A DNA stretch of 62,673 nt, filler included, from Hausera hauseri (Eukaryota), in NCBI GenBank assembly GCA_046269625.1. It is 11 parts of 11 records of this genome, joined end to end, with 100 filler letters (N's around TTAATTAATTAA, not from the genome) between each part and the next. Parts side by side here need not be neighbours in the genome. Positions count along the whole stretch, not along the records: positions 1 to 4,429 come from JBJURY010586667.1; 10 more parts are not named here. One strand, written 5' to 3'. A program made the translations under genes and the position numbers. A model generated the notes under the pieces. It saw only the letters and a program-made list of their open reading frames with translations, was not told the DNA's origin and searched no databases. Within the stretch, counting starts at the first letter, position 1. Every line of letters starts with the position of its first letter. Of this stretch, positions 1 to 8,485 are shown piece by piece.

Positions 1-2
1 GA

Positions 3-779
3 AGAATGTCTCGAAAAGGTTCGATTGCGCGAAGTACGACTGCTTCTTTGAGGTATTGAAAGGTCACTTAGTTGTGATGTGATAGATGAAATTGCTTGTT
101 GGAGCGCATCAAACTGTTTTTGCATTGTCTGCATTTGTTGTGCAAGTAAGGTGTTGTCTAAAGGTGTGTGAATGGTTGCAGCTGCTACTGGCTGTGAATT
201 GTTGGATTGAAGAATGTCGAAACTCTTATCCGCTAGTAGTGCAAGTTTTTCAATGGGTGTAGACTCATCAACTACCGTAAGTAGAGCTCGAATGGATGTT
301 GGCAGGGAAGACAGAAAATAACGACGAAGAAGGTCGGAATTATTGGTAGGAGTCACTCCCAAAGAACTAAGCTGGGAAATTGCGGTCTTGAGGAAATCAG
401 ATGGTTTAAGATTCCCAATAGCATGTTCATTGAAGTACTTTTGGATAATGCTGTCGATTGAAGGATCGGTGATGTGAAGAACCGACTCGTACAGCATGTC
501 ATACGGGCTGGAAGAAGACAAAATATCAGCTAGATTGGTAATCTGCTGCTTGATGTTGGCTGGCAGTAATAAAAGCAAACTGTTAGCACGCAGAAATGCG
601 TCTGTAATGTGATTTGATTTAAGCCACTGTAAATGAAATTGCAACCGCGTGCGAGTAGAGTTTGTTTTGTCGAGAAAGAAGTCGGTGCAAGGGATATTTG
701 GGGATGGTAAAGTAGTGATGTCTGCAAAGCTCAGACCAGATCTGGTTTTCGACAGGTTTTCAGAAGGATCAGGATCTGA
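3..779 (-). mobile_element. gag: Gag N-terminal/capsid region of a CsRn1-like Ty3/gypsy element (runs off window)
   Basis: WLKSNHITDAFLRANSLLLLLP...ITDPSIDSIIQKYFNEHAIGNLKPSDFL...FLSSLPTSIRALLTVVDE..IEKLALLADKS aligns to the Gag ORFs 55885-56214/55337-55921, 37506-38147 and 10964-11215, which lie upstream of pol. Confidence 0.9.
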
Positions 780-3700
780 TCCCCCACGAATACGAAAATG
801 AATTTTAAGATATAAGGTGTATTTTCCGGATGAGGAAGATGGTAGAGAGTTATAAAGGGACAGAGTTAAACCATTGTGAGTAAGACAAAAGTCAGAAAAA
901 TCTAGGAGAAAGATCAATTGTGAATAAAGTTCATGTACCATGATTTTTTTAATGACATTTAATGTGAGAACATGGGTATTGTTGCAGAAAATAAGAAGGG
1001 TGAGGCGATGCGGTACCACGGGCATGGTCGCGGCCAGCTCCCCAGCCGGCAAATCCCTTGTATTTAGAATATGATTTATCGATGAGGAGTAGACGTTCCA
1101 GAATTTAAATGAATAAATATAGAAATGGTTATCATAATTACCTCGTGTTGTATGGTCTGAACTGGTCAAGCAGTACGGGGTAGGAGTGTCTGATAAATCA
1201 ATAATTTCAAACGCTACAAATTCGGTTTGAGTACTGGTCTCATTACGGTTATTTTCTTGAGCTGGGAAATTTATACAGGAAGGACTGTCCAATTCATCGA
1301 TGTCAACCGGCTGATGGGGTATGTTATCAACAGTCTTCAAACAGCAAATATAATTGTCATAATCAACCGGAATATGATTTCGAAAACAAGTGGTACACCA
1401 TTTAAATCGCCGTTGAAGAACAATGGATGAATCGCTGCAGTTGCGCAATTTCAGACACGCGTACGATTCGTCAAAAGATACAGGACTAATAGGACTTTCT
1501 GTATTTTCGTCATCGTTAAGATTCAGATTCTTTGCCAAATTACTGATGACACCAGATACATGTTGACTAAATTGTAATTGGTGGAGATCATCATGTGAAA
1601 GAGAATCTTGAGAAATAAGATCAAATTTCATAGGTTTTAGTATTGGAGTTGATGTACAGGCAGTACAAGTAATAGGAATAACGTCGGAATCAGAATCAGA
1701 TGAATCGAATGAATTACTAGAATTAGAAGAGCTACTAGATGGTTGGCGAATCATATTTGCCTTTGGACTACTATGCGATCGTTTTGTAATGTGATCTAAC
1801 CATCTTTGTTGAATTGATTTTTCCTTAAAATGAATTTGTGTCACTGTGGCCTGTAAAAGATGTAGTAGAATTAATTCATAAGGAAAACTGGTATCTTTCA
1901 TTCGTTGACTAGTAACATGAACTTTGTCTAAGGTAATTAAGGGGAAAATTTTGCACACTTGATTTAAGGATTTAATATTTTTCAATAAATATTTGTCGTT
2001 TTGCTTTGAACATGTCACTAATTGCAATGGACTGTCTTGTTTCACTTCCTTTTTATATTTTATGTTTTCTGAAACAAATGATTTTAATAATACTCTATCA
2101 GGTTTCAAACTGTGAGACTGCTCTGGTATACTATCAATATAATTAAGTCTTGGTCGAGCTTCTTCCGGTAAATTTAAAGCCAGAAGTTTCAAAAGGTCTT
2201 TTTCTATATTGGAAATATTAAAATGTTTATTTTTGAGTGAATAAAACGCAACAAGAAAATTATTCGTTACACCATTGACATGTATCGTAAAACAATTTTC
2301 AATTTCTTGATGGCTCAGAATGCATGAATTGATTTCGTTTGTAAATATTTTTTTTCCATTTACTTTTATCATATCATCAATTCTTCCACAAACAAATAGT
2401 CTACTGTTGTCAATGAAACCCATGTCACCTGTATGAAATGTTGGGCCACATGATAGTAAGACATTATTACCGATAATAATAATTTCATAATTCCCATCAT
2501 TGTCAATTTGCTGCAAATGTACGGAGTTATTTGGAATAGGAAATCCAACTGACAAACAATCATTTTTTGTTAATTTAATAACATCATCATGAGTGTAAAA
2601 TATATCGAAACAAACATCTCCGCAGACTTCCGTTGATCCGTAACGATTGACTAATTTACACTCCAGAGTACCAGATATATTCATTACACGTTGAGCTAAC
2701 TGTGGAGATAACACTTCTCCACTGCTTATCAGCGTTTTCAACGAAGACAAATTTTTTAGTAAATGGTATCTTTCTTCAATTTCATTAATCCATCTCAATA
2801 ACAATGATGGAACACATAGTAGCCACGTAGCATTATAAAATTGAATCAAATTTGCTAAATTTGTTGTGTCACAAGCATCCAACTGAGATACAATCAATAT
2901 TGTTTTTGTAGCCAAAAGGCAACTCAGAGTTTCAATAATATTATCGACAAACATGAATCCGGTCCTGTGACAAATGATGTAGTTTTCTTCAAAAGGCAAA
3001 TACCGACATTGCCAAAAAAGACGATTAAATATTTGTTTGTGAGTCAGAATTACTGTTTTCGGTCGTCCGTTACTACCTGATGTATACAAAAGAACTACGG
3101 GATAATTACAATTGTACGGGATTAAAATTTCATTTGGTAGCAGATTGCAATTGATTATTTTCGATTCATCAGAATGCTGAATACCAGTACACAGAATGGT
3201 ATCGTAAAAGTACCAAAACGTTTCGTATTTTTTGGATTTTATCCAGTTTACAAAATATTTCTTGCTCTTTTCAATACATTCACGATATTCAAATTTGCAA
3301 GCAATTGTCATGACAAATTGGTCTTTCAATTTGTTATTTGTAGTATGGTCGTCTTTTATTCCGACCCACTTAATTTCTTCAAATGGCTTACGTACTAATT
3401 GACGAACATATTTGCTGAATTTCTGCTTAAAATATGGATCGCCAGAAACTGAATTTAAAACGTCGAAGTATTCAGATACACAACGCCAAATGATTGATTC
3501 CTTTTCATTTGGCAAGTATTCAAATAAATCAAAAATTAATTCTGGGTCTTCAAGTTGACCGTGACTAAACGAATAAAATAAGTCATCCACAAATTGCAGC
3601 CTTGATAATGCTGGAATGGCCAAATACTTTGATTGCAACTGGTAGATTATATTCTGCACATTTCTTGTGTCGTATTTGATTCTAAGAAATCCAATTTTAT

Positions 3701-4427
3701 CCGGATTGAATATTATCCAGTCATCAGATTTCATTGGACTCGTTAACGTAATAATACCACGTCTTTTATAAAACCAGTTGATATCTTGACTCTCCAATGT
3801 AGTATCACCTTTTCTGATGCAAGTAAGTGGAACGGGCCACACATTATCAAAATTTTCCTCTGTACTACCATATTGAGTAATGTTCAAATGGTTTTCATCG
3901 AATGTCTCAATTTCCACAATTGGAAATCCAATTAGAATTTCCCATGGTGTAATTATTTTATATACATTTGTGTTGTGAAAGATCCCATCAATGTATAACC
4001 AGAAGTCGCTCGTAGACATTGGCTTTTTTTTCTGATCATCCATTAAAACCTGCATGGCGCGTTGAAAATTCTCAGATCCGAGATATTTTTCTACCATTCT
4101 GATCATTGCATAGCCTTTTAGAAAGCCCACGTCGTCAAAAAATTTCTCCACTTCTTGTGGATCGTGGGGGTACACTGACAAACTATGCGTGCTTTGTGAC
4201 CCATCAATGTACAGACCAAGGATTGTTTCTCTGTAAATTCTGTCAATTTCCACACTTGATCGTCCCTTTGCTTTTCCTTCCATGAAGCATGTCAGAGCTT
4301 CTAACAGCCATAGAGAATCAAACCAATCAATTTTAAGATTATTTCCTATCCACAAATGTGCTATTTCATGTACAATTGTGTTTTTCTTAATCTGATTGCC
4401 TCTCACATCATTTTTATCGACTGTGAG
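3..4427 (-). CDS. Partial chimeric polyprotein: M1 aminopeptidase - Ebony-like adenylation domain - PH-like domain - Ser/Asp-rich linker - UBL(RGG) - gypsy Gag
   Basis: Manual translation of the minus frame with codons starting at 4427, 4424 and so on finds no stop in 1475 codons. It is open at both ends (spacer at 5', window edge at 3'), which is probably why the ORF track omits it. Confidence 0.9.
780..1004 (-). CDS. Ubiquitin-like domain with C-terminal di-Gly (copy 1)
   Basis: 75 aa LTLLIFCNNTHVLTLNVIKKIMVHELYSQLIFLLDFSDFCLTHNGLTLSLYNSLPSSSSGKYTLYLKIHFRIRGG. GG codons at 780-785. Homologous to copies at 11596, 38567 and 56367. Confidence 0.75.
1782..2030 (-). CDS. PH-domain-like fragment, part of the polyprotein
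   Basis: LQLVTCSK..KYLLK..FPLITLDKVHV...YELILL...IHFKEKSIQQRWLDHITK. Beta-strand pattern followed by a C-terminal helix with Trp, as in PH domains. Pattern recognition only. Confidence 0.5.
2082..3101 (-). CDS. Ebony / beta-alanyl-amine NRPS-type adenylation domain (motifs A3-A10), part of the polyprotein
   Basis: LLYTSGSNGRPK, NRLFWQ, FVDNI (Ebony-type FVD), SSGEVL, NRYGSTEVCGDV, VGFPIPN, FHTGDMG, GRIDDMIKVNG, SLKPDR. No N-terminal subdomain start and no thiolation domain. Confidence 0.88.
3165..4427 (-). CDS. M1-family aminopeptidase fragment (zinc site plus start of ERAP1-like C-terminal region), part of the polyprotein
   Basis: HEIAH-x18-E zinc motif (TIVHEIAHLWIGNNLKIDWFDSLWLLE; HEIAH at 4356-4370), plus LKGYAMIRM, GFPIV, WPVPLT, WIIFNPDKIGFLRIKYD and SRLQFVDD. 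No introns. Confidence 0.92.
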
Positions 4428-4429
4428 CA

Positions 4430-4682: not shown

Positions 4683-5479
4683 CTACAAAAAAATCCAAAC
4701 ATACAGCACTTTAATGAATGTTCTTGTTTGATCTCCACATCACCGAGCGTCAGCTGTTATGGATGAGCCCTGTCATGGGCTGTAGTCCTAAGAAGGACTT
4801 AGGAGTAGTTGTGTTGAGCATTCCTGATGTCCCAGTGGTGTCTAGTAGGGAAGGTCCTGCAGGTTTTAGTGCAATGCTTGGCCTCCTAGAAGTGATCCAC
4901 CTCTCAAATGGGAACCATGGTGATCATTCCAGCATTGGCCAGAATTTCTTCTGTTTCCAGAACACACTGCATGGAAGTGATGAGAGGTCTTGGCCAGTAT
5001 CTTGGCCCTGGCCTTGATGAAGCGATCTCAGTGTCTATAATGAATGTTAAAATATAGCCAATCTGGTTCTGGACAAAGAAGATGTTTACAATGCTACTCT
5101 GCACTTATAAAATTGCTGGAAGTAAGTGCAGAGATGTAAGTGCTATAATATGAAGAAAAGTTAATGTTGCCATTATTAAACACAACATGCCTGAGAAACA
5201 TTCGAAGAGGGATGATTTACGCACAATAAGAAAAAACTGTGAAGATGGATCAGATATGTCCTCAGAAAAGATCTGGATGACATTACCCAGCATAAAAACA
5301 GTGAAAGTAGAGATGAACAAAATGCAACAGACCAAAAAATGTGCTGTTGCACTATAAAACACAATGTGTGCTGAATGATGCCTGCTTTCATACTTTACCC
5401 ATAGGCACATGATGATAAATAACCCATGTTAATTTAAGTGTGCCTGAGCGAAATGTTGGGAAAATCTCTGTATACTTAG

Positions 5480-7700
5480 GTTAGAGTATGCAGTCATATG
5501 TTTCAATTCAGAGATGCAATAAAGAAACATGAGACAGGTCTAGCCATTTGCATCTCTACATCCCTCTAGTTTAATCGTAGCTGTGACCTTGAACTAACGG
5601 ATGTAGAGTGTGTTTGGCTGGAATTGAAACCTCCTAATGTCAAACCAATCTTAATAGGATACGTATACAGAAACCCCGGTTCACCAGCCGTGTGGTTTGA
5701 CTCGTTCGCTAAAATGATGGACAAGGTCTGGGAATCACCAAATGAAATTATTCTGCTTGGTGACTTTAATATAGACCTTCACAAACAAAACACTACATGG
5801 AATAACATTGCGCTCTCATACAACCTCACACAGTTAGTCAAGCAGTCCACTAGAGTTACAGATACATCATCAACACTCATTGATCATATATACACAACAT
5901 GCGCGGAGAACATAACAGAGTGCTATGTCATACAAACAGCAATGAGTGACCACTATCCTGTTTGTTGTACATGGTCAAAAAGGGGATTCAAACCACCTAA
6001 ACAAGAACACACCACCGTGAGCTTCAGAAGCTTCAAATATTTTAATCTACCTTTTTTCTTAAATGACTTACAATGTGCACCTCTATCGTTTGTGTATCAG
6101 CTTCCAGATCCCGATGATGCCATAACATACTGGACTCAAACGTTTCGACGAATTTTTGACAAACACGTTCCACAAAAGCAAGTGCGTGTTAAAAACGCCC
6201 AAAAGTCACCGTGGATCACCAATGAAGTTCTTGAAACCATGAGGGAAAGAGATAAGGCGCACAAACAGAAGGACTTCACAACGTACAGAATGTTGCGAAA
6301 TAAGGTACAATATCTAATTCGTCAGGAAAAGAAACTGCACTTTACAAAGATGGTGCACAATAAAAGTAACAGCAAGAGTGTGTGGAAAGCCATAAATACA
6401 CTGACACATAAAACAAAAACACAGAGTGTGCCAAACAGATGCTCCATTACAGCTGAACAGTTTAGTTACCATTTTAAGACAGAAATAAACAACCTGAAAT
6501 CATCTATAGAACACACTGATTGCGATATGAGTACCGGTAATCTAACAGACTTCTACAACAACAAACACGACACAAAGATACTAGGGCAGATCCCCTTTCT
6601 AACAGTCCATGAGGTCTTTCAACATCTCACGTCACTCAAGAACAACAACTCCTCTGGACTGGATGGGATAAGCAATATAATATTACGCCACGCAGCGCCT
6701 GTCATTTGTGACTCGTTAACGTACATATACAACCAATGTATTGCTTATAACTACTTTCCCGCACCTTTTAAAATTGCAAAAGTGTACCCCCTCCACAAGT
6801 CAGGATCACATAATGATCCAAACAACTAAAGACCTATTTCACTCTTATCGTTTCTATCAAAGCCACAAGAAACACATTTACAACACTACATTACAACACG
6901 TAACAACAAATGAGCTTTTGCATGAAAACCAATCGGGTTTCAGACACAAACATTCATGCCACACTTCTCTTACTAAAATTGTGGACAACTAGCTGTCTGA
7001 TATAAACAATAGTAGAGTATGTGGCGCTGTCTTTGTTGATTTCAAGAAGGCCTTCTATATGGTTGACCACACAATATTGATGGAATAATTGGGGAAAATC
7101 ATGCTAGGCCAGCCACTGTTGGATTTTTTTTAGATCATTTCTGACAGACAGACAGCAGCAAGTATTTCATAACCACTCCATGTCACCACTGTTGATCATG
7201 GTGTCACCTGACAGACAGACAGCAGCAAGTATTTCATAATCACTCCATGTCACCACTGTTGATTATGGTGTCCCCTGACAGACAGACAGCAGCAAGTATT
7301 TCATAACCACTCCATGTCAGGCTGTACCACTGTTGATACTGGTGTCCCCTGACAGATAGACATCAACAAGTATGTCACAATCACTGCATGTCAGGCTATG
7401 CCACTGTTGATACTGGTGTCCCCCAAGGCTCCATCCTTGGACCTATACTTTTCTCTGTATACATAAATGGCTTCCCGCTACATTTTACAGTTTCAACCTG
7501 CGGCCTGTTTGCAGACGACTGCACCATATACACAAGCGAAACAGACTGTCAAACTCTATGAAATTCACTACAGTTGAACATACTTTCCACTTGCTGTAAA
7601 ATGAATCATGTGACTATAAATATTTGAAAAACAAAATCAATGATGATCACGACTAGACAAACGTTTCAAATCAAACTCTACCAAATCAAACACTACCAAT
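5480..7700 (+). mobile_element. CR1/L2-group LINE ORF2 (AP endonuclease plus RT), decayed
   Basis: ORF 5624-6829 has YRNP, LLGDFN, TLIDHIY, SDHYPV and SSGLDGI. Downstream frameshifted QSGFR, GVPQGSILGP (~7416-7445) and FADD (~7508). Ends approximate. Confidence 0.9.
7141..7422 (+). repeat. Four-copy tandem duplication (67-74 bp unit) inside the LINE RT
   Basis: Unit CTGACAGACAGACAGCAGCAAGTATTTCATAA...CCACTGTTGAT..GGTGTC starts at 7141, 7208, 7275 and 7349. Confidence 0.92.
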
Positions 7701-8485
7701 CCTTGGAACTTTACACAACTGATGTATAAAAATAAGGTGCCGGTGTGAGTACCAAGTGAAGCGTGGGAATAGAAATATAAGCGATGACAGAAGTGTTGAG
7801 ATGCTGGTTGACCACATGCAGCCACGGCGTCGGATTCACAGAGTATTCTGTCAAAGCCAGCCTACACGTTAGATGGCATCGTTTCCTCTTGATCGTTCGC
7901 ATGATGAAAGCATTACGTGGATGCACTGAAGGGTCATTATGCTATGAGTGGAAAGGACAAAGTAGACTGCTGGATGGATGAAACATTTTCAATAAAAAGC
8001 ACGTTCAGAACGAATAAAGTAGATACTGAGAGACGTAGCCTCAAAAATTCGTACCAGAGAAATTCTTTGGGAAAGTAAAAATGGCATAGGGTTGTGCTGA
8101 CAATATCATCCACGCATGTGCCGGTGTCGAGGGTAAAAATGTGAACACTAACACCACATTTCCATATACACCTGCCTGTATGCGTGAAATTGACGTTACT
8201 TGATGAGGGTCGTGTGGGAGACATTACAGTTACATAAGAATTCGTAGATGCAGAATGCAAATAAGAGGAGAATAATGGAGATGAAAGAACGAATGATAAT
8301 ACGGAAGGAACTACATCCTGGCATATCATACAAGGCTGAACTTAATTCAATGTGTAACTGGTCAAGGTTAATATGAAAACTCTTCGGTGAATCTAGGAAT
8401 GGCAGCGGAGGAGATACGGCAGTGTCCCAAATGCAGCGAGGTTATGTCCATAACACATTACCACATACACACACACTGAGGTGTA

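Follow-up and report, generated by a model that had tools for sequence, protein, structure and literature searches.

Linear fusions in which ubiquitin or a ubiquitin-like (UBL) domain precedes another protein, such as the ubiquitin-ribosomal protein fusions, FUBI-eS30, and Sde2, are cut by host proteases after a terminal GG, and cellular ubiquitin inserts are carried by cytopathic pestiviruses. In the Gag-onc fusions of acutely transforming retroviruses, cellular sequence follows a truncated Gag and the virus is defective. The sequence described here can be set beside both systems. It is a copy of a Ty3/gypsy-type long terminal repeat (LTR) retrotransposon from Hausera hauseri in which fragments of cellular genes (cargo) stand in one frame with a UBL domain and Gag that follow them. 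The copy occupies positions 3 to 4427 of the window, by which is meant the whole stretch of DNA analyzed (62,673 nucleotides, filler included), and was assembled on contig JBJURY010586667.1.

The capture of mRNA by LTR elements through template switching has been described in animals, plants, and yeast, together with multi-gene chimeras, joints at short stretches of microsimilarity, and secondary copying (PMC5131818). Maize Bs1 (Elrouby and Bureau, 2010, as cited in PMC5131818 and PMC7264820) is given there as an example of gene capture by an LTR element. LTR retrotransposons with additional open reading frames (ORFs) beyond gag and pol are also known (PMC7264820), including the bdelloid rotifer elements (PMC5408684).

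The locus resembles the LTR-mediated retrocopies of Tan et al. (2016, PMC5131818) in that intron-less, sense-oriented mRNA fragments are found in an LTR retrotransposon with microsimilarity at the joints, and such units can be copied again. The Drosophila retrocopies of that study replace internal parts of an ORF, whereas here Gag is intact, the cargo is N-terminal and in frame, and the UBL lies between the two. The flanks of the cargo consist of UBL-Gag on the downstream side and, in five other contigs, of a pol tail and head motif on the other side. Also unlike the published cases, the arrangement extends through the family: the cargo varies among many of its copies and among relatives in other assemblies, and the reading frame is preserved. 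As in the linear ubiquitin fusions, a ubiquitin fold ending in (R/L)xGG stands directly before the protein that would be released, and the next residue is never proline. In contrast to those fusions, the UBL is joined to a retrotransposon capsid and is usually preceded by an extension that may run to hundreds of unrelated residues, and cleavage is only predicted. As in Gag-onc, cellular coding sequence in frame with Gag appears to have been captured during reverse transcription; here, however, the cargo precedes a complete Gag and a predicted cleavage module separates them. The elements with additional ORFs differ in that those ORFs are separate and often conserved within a lineage, whereas heterogeneous debris of host genes is fused to Gag in the present family.

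An earlier note, made from the sequence of this DNA, knew of no description of such an architecture. The literature search made here, whose coverage left out most subscription journals, likewise returned no account of a ubiquitin domain ahead of a retrotransposon Gag and none mentioning DUF7041, the Pfam family of this Gag. LTR elements are already known to capture genes and to form multi-gene chimeras (PMC5131818); the ubiquitin module before Gag and the N-terminal, in-frame cargo are new.

Reading Frame and Modules of the Locus

The minus strand of the window from 3 to 4427 is a single stop-free frame of 1475 codons that runs off both ends of the contig. A frame of this length had been reported in the earlier note; the frame is real, but its strand is minus, and the plus-strand reading was rejected as it is filled with about 98 stops. 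The longest open stretches in the remaining five frames of this segment are 51-85 codons. At the base composition of the window the stop probability is 0.068 per random codon, and the chance of 1475 open codons is about 7e-46. The genome is AT-rich, and the source assembly that was searched (869 Mb in 909,086 contigs) is extremely fragmented and repeat-rich. No RNA sequencing run containing the window stretch was found.

All modules are encoded on the minus strand and are given here from the N-terminus. Cargo 1 is an intron-less M1 aminopeptidase fragment at 3162..4427 (ORF amino acids 1-422) that includes the HEXXH motif region, and its N-terminal side is cut by the contig edge. The Pfam matches are Peptidase_M1 at amino acids 11-162 and ERAP1_C at 237-422 (profile positions 1-183 of 318), and M1 aminopeptidases of the PDB match amino acids 7-420. 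Cargo 2, at 2008..3161 (amino acids 423-806), is a fragment of an adenylation (AMP-binding) domain of the nonribosomal peptide synthetase (NRPS) type, with a Pfam AMP-binding match at 442-642 (profile positions 163-357 of 384) and PDB matches to NRPS adenylation domains at 444-643. Both pieces are fragments, because ERAP1_C is cut in the middle of the domain and the adenylation domain lacks its N-terminal ~160 positions. Cargo 3a (module X1, 1739..2007) is the C-terminal part of a PH-type domain and belongs to a larger ORF present on L043 and L049; the longer version of the module on L043 (contig C833460) matches Pfam PH_16. Cargo 3b (module X2, 1187..1738) is Ser-rich, falls in no recognized family, and is also found on L044.

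The cargo is followed by an element-derived leader of 60 amino acids at 1005..1186, which starts with PTPYCL and is shared by close copies. The UBL, a beta-grasp domain ending FRIRGG, is at 780..1004 (amino acids 1142-1216) and was identified by its fold and its relatives. Gag occupies 3..779 and was identified by fold and homology; it consists of a disordered linker, capsid-like helical domains (171-701), and a long helix (60-152). The M1 fragment and the adenylation domain that the earlier note had read in this frame are borne out by the Pfam and PDB matches, and its 75-residue domain ending FRIRGG, followed by Gag, by fold comparison and by the relatives matched by Pfam ubiquitin. For the adenylation domain, which the note called Ebony-like, the matches extend to the AMP-binding and NRPS level. 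Support for its PH-like fragment is indirect and comes through the version on L043.

Ubiquitin-like Domain

The FRIRGG motif is at amino acids 1211-1216 of the ORF (window 780-797), and SDPDPS follows it. About 75 residues before Gag are conserved across diverged copies and end in (F/L)R(I/L)RGG, then SD. The GG is kept in 11 of 16 genome copies, and the remaining copies look decayed. An exhaustive phmmer search of 1.84 billion representatives returned 471 relatives, 33 of them at E <= 1e-10. In 17 of the 17 relatives whose match covers the region, GG is found at the predicted end of the UBL. The residue after it in these relatives is S, G, N, M, A, or T and is never P.

The UBL of the window itself has no Pfam match. 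At the homologous position, Pfam ubiquitin (PF00240) is matched by relatives P0019 (81.5 bits, full length), P0026 (31.1 bits), and P0134 (27.6 bits), and ubiquitin matches below the Pfam threshold were obtained for P0025, P0027, and P0031. The UBL of P0019 is nearly canonical ubiquitin, and that of the window is very diverged. A profile of the 16 copies gave marginal but concordant matches in the PDB to a redesigned ubiquitin (E = 0.012), the UBL of SDE2 (E = 0.064), and eS30 (E = 0.91); the alignment with SDE2 reaches its terminal RVRGG.

A structure of the UBL-Gag portion was predicted using AlphaFold with the relatives as the alignment. The mean predicted local distance difference test (pLDDT) value of the model is 80. 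Residues 12-81 form a beta-grasp (pLDDT 76-88), residues 93-111 a disordered linker, residues 113-289 helical domains (pLDDT >90), and residues 296-326 a long helix. An earlier run on the UBL alone with the 16 in-genome copies gave a pLDDT of 48 and was uninformative. The best Foldseek matches to the UBL are ISG15, ubiquitin, SUMO, and Hub1, each over the full length, with target template modeling scores of 0.65-0.77 and a probability of 1.0. With VIA-align, Z scores of 9-9.8 and root-mean-square deviations of 1.9-2.8 Å were obtained against chains of the ubiquitin family. The predicted model confirms a ubiquitin fold for the domain before Gag, and this RGG-ending domain is conserved in a wide clade of such elements, with GG in all 17 relatives. 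In the subfamily of the window, no Met is conserved where the UBL begins, so UBL-Gag would be made only from an upstream start.

Gag and the Host Element

A search of the source assembly with the last 279 amino acids of the frame returned more than 7000 first-look candidates. All of the 139 candidates that were scored have E < 1e-96 at 61-83% identity, and most carry at least one stop. On L055, L057, and L058, Pfam RVT_1, RT_RNaseH, Integrase_H2C2, and rve appear in this order downstream of the Gag match, and eight or more long contigs have the gag-then-pol layout as well. The order of gag, reverse transcriptase, RNase H, and integrase on the longer copies agrees with the gypsy family named in the earlier note. 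The sequence of the window copy does not reach pol, its contig ending inside Gag, and the counterpart of the two C-terminal Cys/His boxes of the relatives is beyond the contig edge.

The relatives match Pfam DUF7041 in their Gag. In the ESM Atlas, the nearest clusters consist of DUF7041 proteins, for the most part from arthropods, with scores of 0.83-0.85 that serve as a lead only. In VIA-align the helical part (residues 113-289) matches the capsid (CA) of murine leukemia virus (Z 9.4-9.6), the CA-like domain of PEG10 (Z 9.1), and the Copia capsid (Z 8.8). The Gag of the window belongs to a Ty3/gypsy-type family with thousands of copies in the genome. A further homologous-protein search gave 3 matches only, and no related loci were found in metagenome contigs.

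It is improbable that the pol-less cargo-UBL-Gag proteins are domesticated genes that serve the host, with frames under ordinary purifying selection. Gag domestication is common, PEG10 is among the fold matches, and the long open-frame contigs (the window, L045, L046, and L050) end before pol could show. Domestication is opposed by the truncation of the enzyme fragments, which are unlikely to be active, by amino acid changes that are near neutral, by the variation of the cargo between copies, and by a Gag family of thousands of decaying copies at very high read depth.

Contigs from runs X2, X3, and X4, which are labeled as three other organisms in three other studies, are 99-100% identical to window 1-386, the final 386 nt of Gag in this copy (0-3 mismatches). 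Ten differently labeled organisms share 8-64% of the 31-mers of the window. Such identity across organisms would be expected if the species are siblings, if the samples have a contaminant or symbiont in common, or if the element has recently spread horizontally.

Parent Gene of the M1 Cargo

Exons of the M1 parent gene were located on C270320 (L032), C847476 (L035), C181151 (L039), and C475024 (L034) at 95-98% nucleotide identity to the window. The parent has GT..AG introns of 48 nt at window 4352/4353 (L032:801-849) and of 39 nt at window 3222/3223 (L034, reverse complement 107-145). The 39-nt intron is also carried by one contig assembled from run X1. Further splice-site bounds of the parent exons map to window ~4250, 4115, and 4048. 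Four intron positions of the parent are all missing from the window. An intron-bearing gene gave rise to the M1 piece, which is a processed copy, and the parent that the earlier note had suggested looking for elsewhere in the genome was found for it. The sequences of the adenylation domain and of module X elsewhere in the genome were seen as intron-less only, and the intron-loss result applies to the M1 piece.

The M1 and adenylation-domain pieces are single-copy in the assembly, bar short fragments on other contigs; for the adenylation domain, the overlap is one of 87 nt with L041. No contig that continues the window past 4429 was found by searching with the neighboring exon of the parent and with the contig end. 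The summed word depth of the intron-less M1/adenylation-domain cargo (window 2073-4429) in run X1 is ~10-50, against 6.4 for the contig with the 39-nt intron. This difference hints at several near-identical, cargo-bearing copies collapsed by the assembler, with depth not equal to copy number.

Joints between the Modules

The first joint (J1), from M1 to the adenylation domain, is at 3163..3171 on the minus strand. It is in the middle of an exon, in frame, and has a microhomology of 9 nt. At J1 the window reads TGATGAATC, the M1 gene TGATGAGTC, and the adenylation-domain gene TGGTGAGTC; TG(A/G)TGA(A/G)TC is common to all three. The M1 ORF runs on beyond J1 in L034, and the upstream part of the adenylation domain (AMP-binding profile 19-100) leads into J1 on L041. 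The joint is bridged by an independently assembled contig of 470 nt from run X1, which covers window 2909-3378 with 1 mismatch at a depth of 28.8. J1 is the junction placed near 3150 in the earlier note.

The second joint (J2, ~2007) connects the tail of the adenylation domain with the middle of the larger ORF of L043 and L049 and has an imperfect microhomology. The third (J3, 1738/1739) connects module X1 with the Ser-rich module of L044; it is also present in L043 and is therefore older than the copy in the window. The fourth (J4, 1186/1187) connects the cargo with the leader of the element. At J2-J4, the raw overlap between the partners is 2-10 nt. All four joints of the window are in frame, and every piece is sense-oriented.

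J4 is a recurrent breakpoint. L045-L048 match the window at 82-95% DNA identity downstream of 1187, and three different partners are found upstream of this base among the window and these contigs: the short module X in the window, module X with an additional 105 nt in L046, and a DUF547-like sequence in L045 and L047. A C-terminal fragment of a dynein heavy chain is further upstream of the DUF547-like piece in L047, and L045 and L047 have one common joint between cargo and leader. The PTPYCL leader is found in other subfamilies too (L050, L051, L056, L008, L019, and L023), and some of the leader-bearing subfamily copies share extra upstream sequence with one another.

The word lengths typical of de Bruijn assemblers are 21-31. 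The overlaps of 2-10 nt at J2-J4 are shorter than this, and misassembly at these joints is implausible for that reason. An assembly of 909,086 contigs from a repeat-rich genome could lead one to suspect that a short-read assembler joined unrelated contigs, but this is very improbable given the independent contig across J1, the short overlaps, the recurrence of J3 and J4 in diverged sister contigs, and the fact that erroneous joins would not preserve the frame four times. With intron loss in the M1 piece, a common sense orientation, and microhomology at the joints, the capture of pieces of cellular mRNA by template switching is well supported, in agreement with the intron-less, co-oriented capture suggested in the earlier note.

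L041 (C256533) is a mosaic of cellular coding sequence without a visible UBL-Gag on the same short contig. Its frame resembles the ORF of the L049 type (C900337) with two large in-frame internal deletions at short repeats (KWD..KWD and GKSE), joined to the N-terminal part of the adenylation-domain gene.

Cargo in Other Copies and in Relatives

Five long contigs have the same order of parts, all co-oriented: the end of integrase, a conserved pol tail of ~850 nt, a G-run with a TG-initial motif, a stretch of 3.1-4.3 kb, and UBL-Gag. The stretch of 3.1-4.3 kb differs in each of the five and contains plus-strand ORFs of 100-390 amino acids. The cargo recognized in these stretches includes fragments of an RNB exoribonuclease (profile 106-325 of 326), of Helicase_C, and of RasGEF. 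Co-oriented fragments of unrelated cellular genes were found upstream of UBL-Gag in every long contig examined. Cargo has been copied together with UBL-Gag: the combination of RasGEF cargo and UBL recurs, across the same joint, in additional copies at 83-89% identity.

Relatives from other assemblies have cellular fragments ahead of ubiquitin-Gag in single predicted ORFs of 700-1320 amino acids. The fragments are Rrp44_CSD1 and a piece of CNOT1 in P0004, histone H2A in P0021, a cohesin SCC3 HEAT fragment in P0031, and a RING finger in P0134. Each of the P0004 and P0021 clusters includes a second member located on another contig. Between ~0 and ~876 residues precede the UBL in the relatives, and in 9 of 17 this extension exceeds 120 residues; with stops at a frequency of 0.068 per codon, more than 120 open codons at this position have a chance probability of ~2e-4 in each case. 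The sister contigs and the ORFs of the relatives together substantiate the claim of the earlier note that different copies carry different cargo in the frame of Gag.

P0003 (397 amino acids, ENA) has a bacterial-looking signal peptide, a region matching a domain of unknown function (PF19089), and the C-terminal half of this Gag. It is either a chimera of metagenome assembly or another odd capture.

Proposed Mechanism and Retention of the Frame

It is, on balance, probable that the window contains a gypsy copy with captured host-mRNA cargo ahead of UBL-GG-Gag. In the explanation proposed here, the normal Gag precursor of this Ty3/gypsy-type LTR retrotransposon would consist of a short leader, a UBL ending in GG, and the capsid. 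In the window, at least three to four segments of spliced mRNA, from the M1, adenylation-domain, PH-domain, and Ser-rich genes, would have been added to the leader; reverse transcriptase would have joined them by template switching at short microhomologies during cDNA synthesis. The pieces would be sense-oriented and intron-less because they were stitched from spliced mRNAs at that step. Translation would start in or upstream of the cargo and read through to Gag, and a ubiquitin-specific protease of the host would cut after GG and free an unchanged Gag with the N-terminus SDPDPS. By analogy with the linear ubiquitin fusions there is good reason to expect this cleavage. The 5' coding leader would then tolerate any insertion that keeps the frame open, and such tolerance is proposed as the cause of the different in-frame cargo in copies and relatives.

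The frame was compared in sister contigs that were found by homology and not by ORF length. These are open over 218-561 codons with 0-1 stops: L045 is open over 543 codons and L050 over 561 codons, the dynein and DUF547-like contig L047 has 1 stop in 542 codons, and L046 has 1 stop. The indels of at least 6 nt between sister copies and in run X1 are all multiples of three (18, 6, 39, 153, 105, 78, 66, 192, and 402). A stop is created by 4.9% of random substitutions; the probability of no stop would be 0.04-0.002 at an assumed private divergence of 1.5-3%. These observations are fitted best, short of proof, by a screen for open frames that acts whenever the element is copied, with neutral decay thereafter, and there are good grounds, statistical ones among them, to suspect that cargo is selected for being in frame.

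A G-run resembling a polypurine tract, with a conserved TG-initial motif, is found 700-900 nt after the integrase core in 7 contigs and was taken as a putative LTR head. No LTR pair was detected in a direct-repeat search of six long contigs, which returned only the pol duplication of L053 and the tandem repeat of L057 described below, and a search of four inter-regions for an inverted copy of the head motif or for other repeats gave nothing convincing. Comparison of the sequence after the head motif with all loci gave no LTR body common to the subfamilies. An LTR or primer-binding site (PBS) between cargo and UBL, which the earlier note had considered as placing the cargo outside the element, is absent from the window, where the frame runs on without interruption; the sole conserved block was examined as a candidate PBS and rejected.

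Several observations weigh against the proposed explanation. Substitutions are near neutral, with 6 synonymous and 12 nonsynonymous changes between the M1 piece and its parent, 7 and 15 in module X, and 6 and 16 in UBL-Gag; the amino acid sequence is therefore not conserved between copies. The open frame of this one copy could in part be a matter of youth: the probability of no stop would be 0.12-0.34 at a private divergence of 0.5-1% (0.34 at 0.5%). Because the window was flagged as a long ORF and the relatives are ORFs from gene callers, both favor in-frame examples. The indels of 18 and 6 nt are within a repeat of Ser codons where slippage is possible, those of module X were possibly inherited from paralogues of the host gene, and the intervening sequence at the skip joints of run X1 is not known. 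In the majority of the other copies, the frame before the UBL is interrupted by stops less than ~100 codons away, though these copies are old and decayed. A 5' LTR, PBS, and target-site duplication upstream of the cargo, the marks of an element that the earlier note had named, did not turn up for any cargo, and no LTR 3' end was found; the window contig ends inside the M1 fragment, and the upstream side of its cargo is past that edge. As the head motif nearly always follows a G-run, it gave no demonstration of 5' or solo LTRs; a single LTR-head site lacks the G-run, which may reflect contig breaks at the edges of repeats. The membership of the cargo in the mobile unit rests for this reason on indirect evidence, from which we infer that the cargo is inside the transposing unit.

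Alternatively, the copies would be dead-end chimeric retrocopies, ordinary products of LTR-mediated retroposition by template switching between element RNA and cellular mRNAs, that landed once and did not transpose further; the open frame would reflect youth and the choice of examples, and the UBL would have a role unrelated to cargo. The mechanism and the multi-gene chimeras are documented in animals (PMC5131818), the substitution patterns are near neutral, the M1/adenylation-domain cargo of the window is single-copy in the assembly, and no LTR was found around the cargo. Dead-end copies are nevertheless unlikely, as several cargo-UBL units occur in multiple diverged copies with a common joint, the frame is kept at 4 of 4 joints and in 9 of 9 long indels, and the same architecture appears in other assemblies as ORFs of 700-1300 amino acids. 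In addition, the cargo of the published retrocopies replaces internal ORF sequence (PMC5131818), whereas the whole of Gag stands behind the cargo in the present family.

The recurrence of the breakpoint at 1187 could also be explained if the cargo were part of a very long LTR, at the end of U3 that adjoins R, with 1187 as the 5' end of the genomic RNA. Strong-stop minus-strand DNA would jump to a cellular mRNA in place of the 3' R, which would put cargo at precisely this base, and the cargo would be copied into both LTRs; an open frame into Gag would be incidental, or would matter only where transcripts begin ahead of the cargo. The meeting of three upstream partners with the element at the same base fits this arrangement. 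So do the five long contigs with integrase, G-run and head, variable cargo, and UBL-Gag, with nothing else conserved between, which could be read as head, cargo, and R-U5 of one LTR. We regard a long LTR of this kind as quite unlikely, since the expected downstream PBS was not found (the sole conserved block has no matching tRNA and is diverged in the subfamily of the window), the sequences upstream of the first and the second UBL-Gag on contig C81102 are unlike each other, and the keeping of the frame is left unexplained.

The block in question is a GC-rich stretch of ~40 nt, conserved at the nucleotide level across all subfamilies and located ~130-170 nt before the first strand of the UBL (e.g., in L005, L007, L013, and L015; window ~1010-1050 is diverged). 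It sits exactly where homology between subfamilies starts and is kept even in copies with a broken frame. It might be a packaging, dimerization, or other cis-acting signal. As a PBS (TGGTTGAGGGACC..., starting with TGG), the block was rejected because no tRNA of the genome has a matching 3' end, and ARAGORN did not recognize the one pattern match as a tRNA. With a looser pattern for the acceptor stem, 29 matches were obtained, compared with 23 for the control, none of them tRNA-like.

Two long contigs have unusual arrangements of their own. On L053 (C903534), two co-oriented pol regions (375-3049 and 5039-7721) are 4.67 kb apart and 81-92% identical, with ~2 kb of other sequence and no Gag between them; the contig is either a tandem array or a recombinant element. 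On L057, a unit of 79 nt is repeated at a spacing of 102 nt at 919-1099, just after the putative LTR head, which is typical of enhancer-like repeats of U3.

Conclusions

The minimal result is that the uncharacterized Pfam family DUF7041 is the capsid of a gypsy clade with a ubiquitin domain, and the UBL-GG-Gag arrangement is a natural analogue of the laboratory "ubiquitin fusion" technique. A broader reading extends to a wide invertebrate Ty3/gypsy clade with DUF7041 as its Gag. A ubiquitin module cleaved by a host protease would insulate Gag throughout this clade, and the leader would act as a landing pad for fragments of host mRNA that are filtered for an open frame. The elements would hypothetically be self-propagating exon-shuffling vectors that express a changing set of host fragments with a UBL tag at the C-terminus. 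This broader reading is plausible, at somewhat less than an even chance. If the proposed mechanism is true, retroelements have a new solution to the problem of sequence inserted before Gag, borrowed from the processing of ubiquitin precursors in the cell, and gene capture by LTR elements comes with its own screen for chimeras that are in frame and can be translated. The captured fragments would be linked together, expressed, and spread through the genome by copying, a combination that exon shuffling requires and that is missing from most retrocopies.

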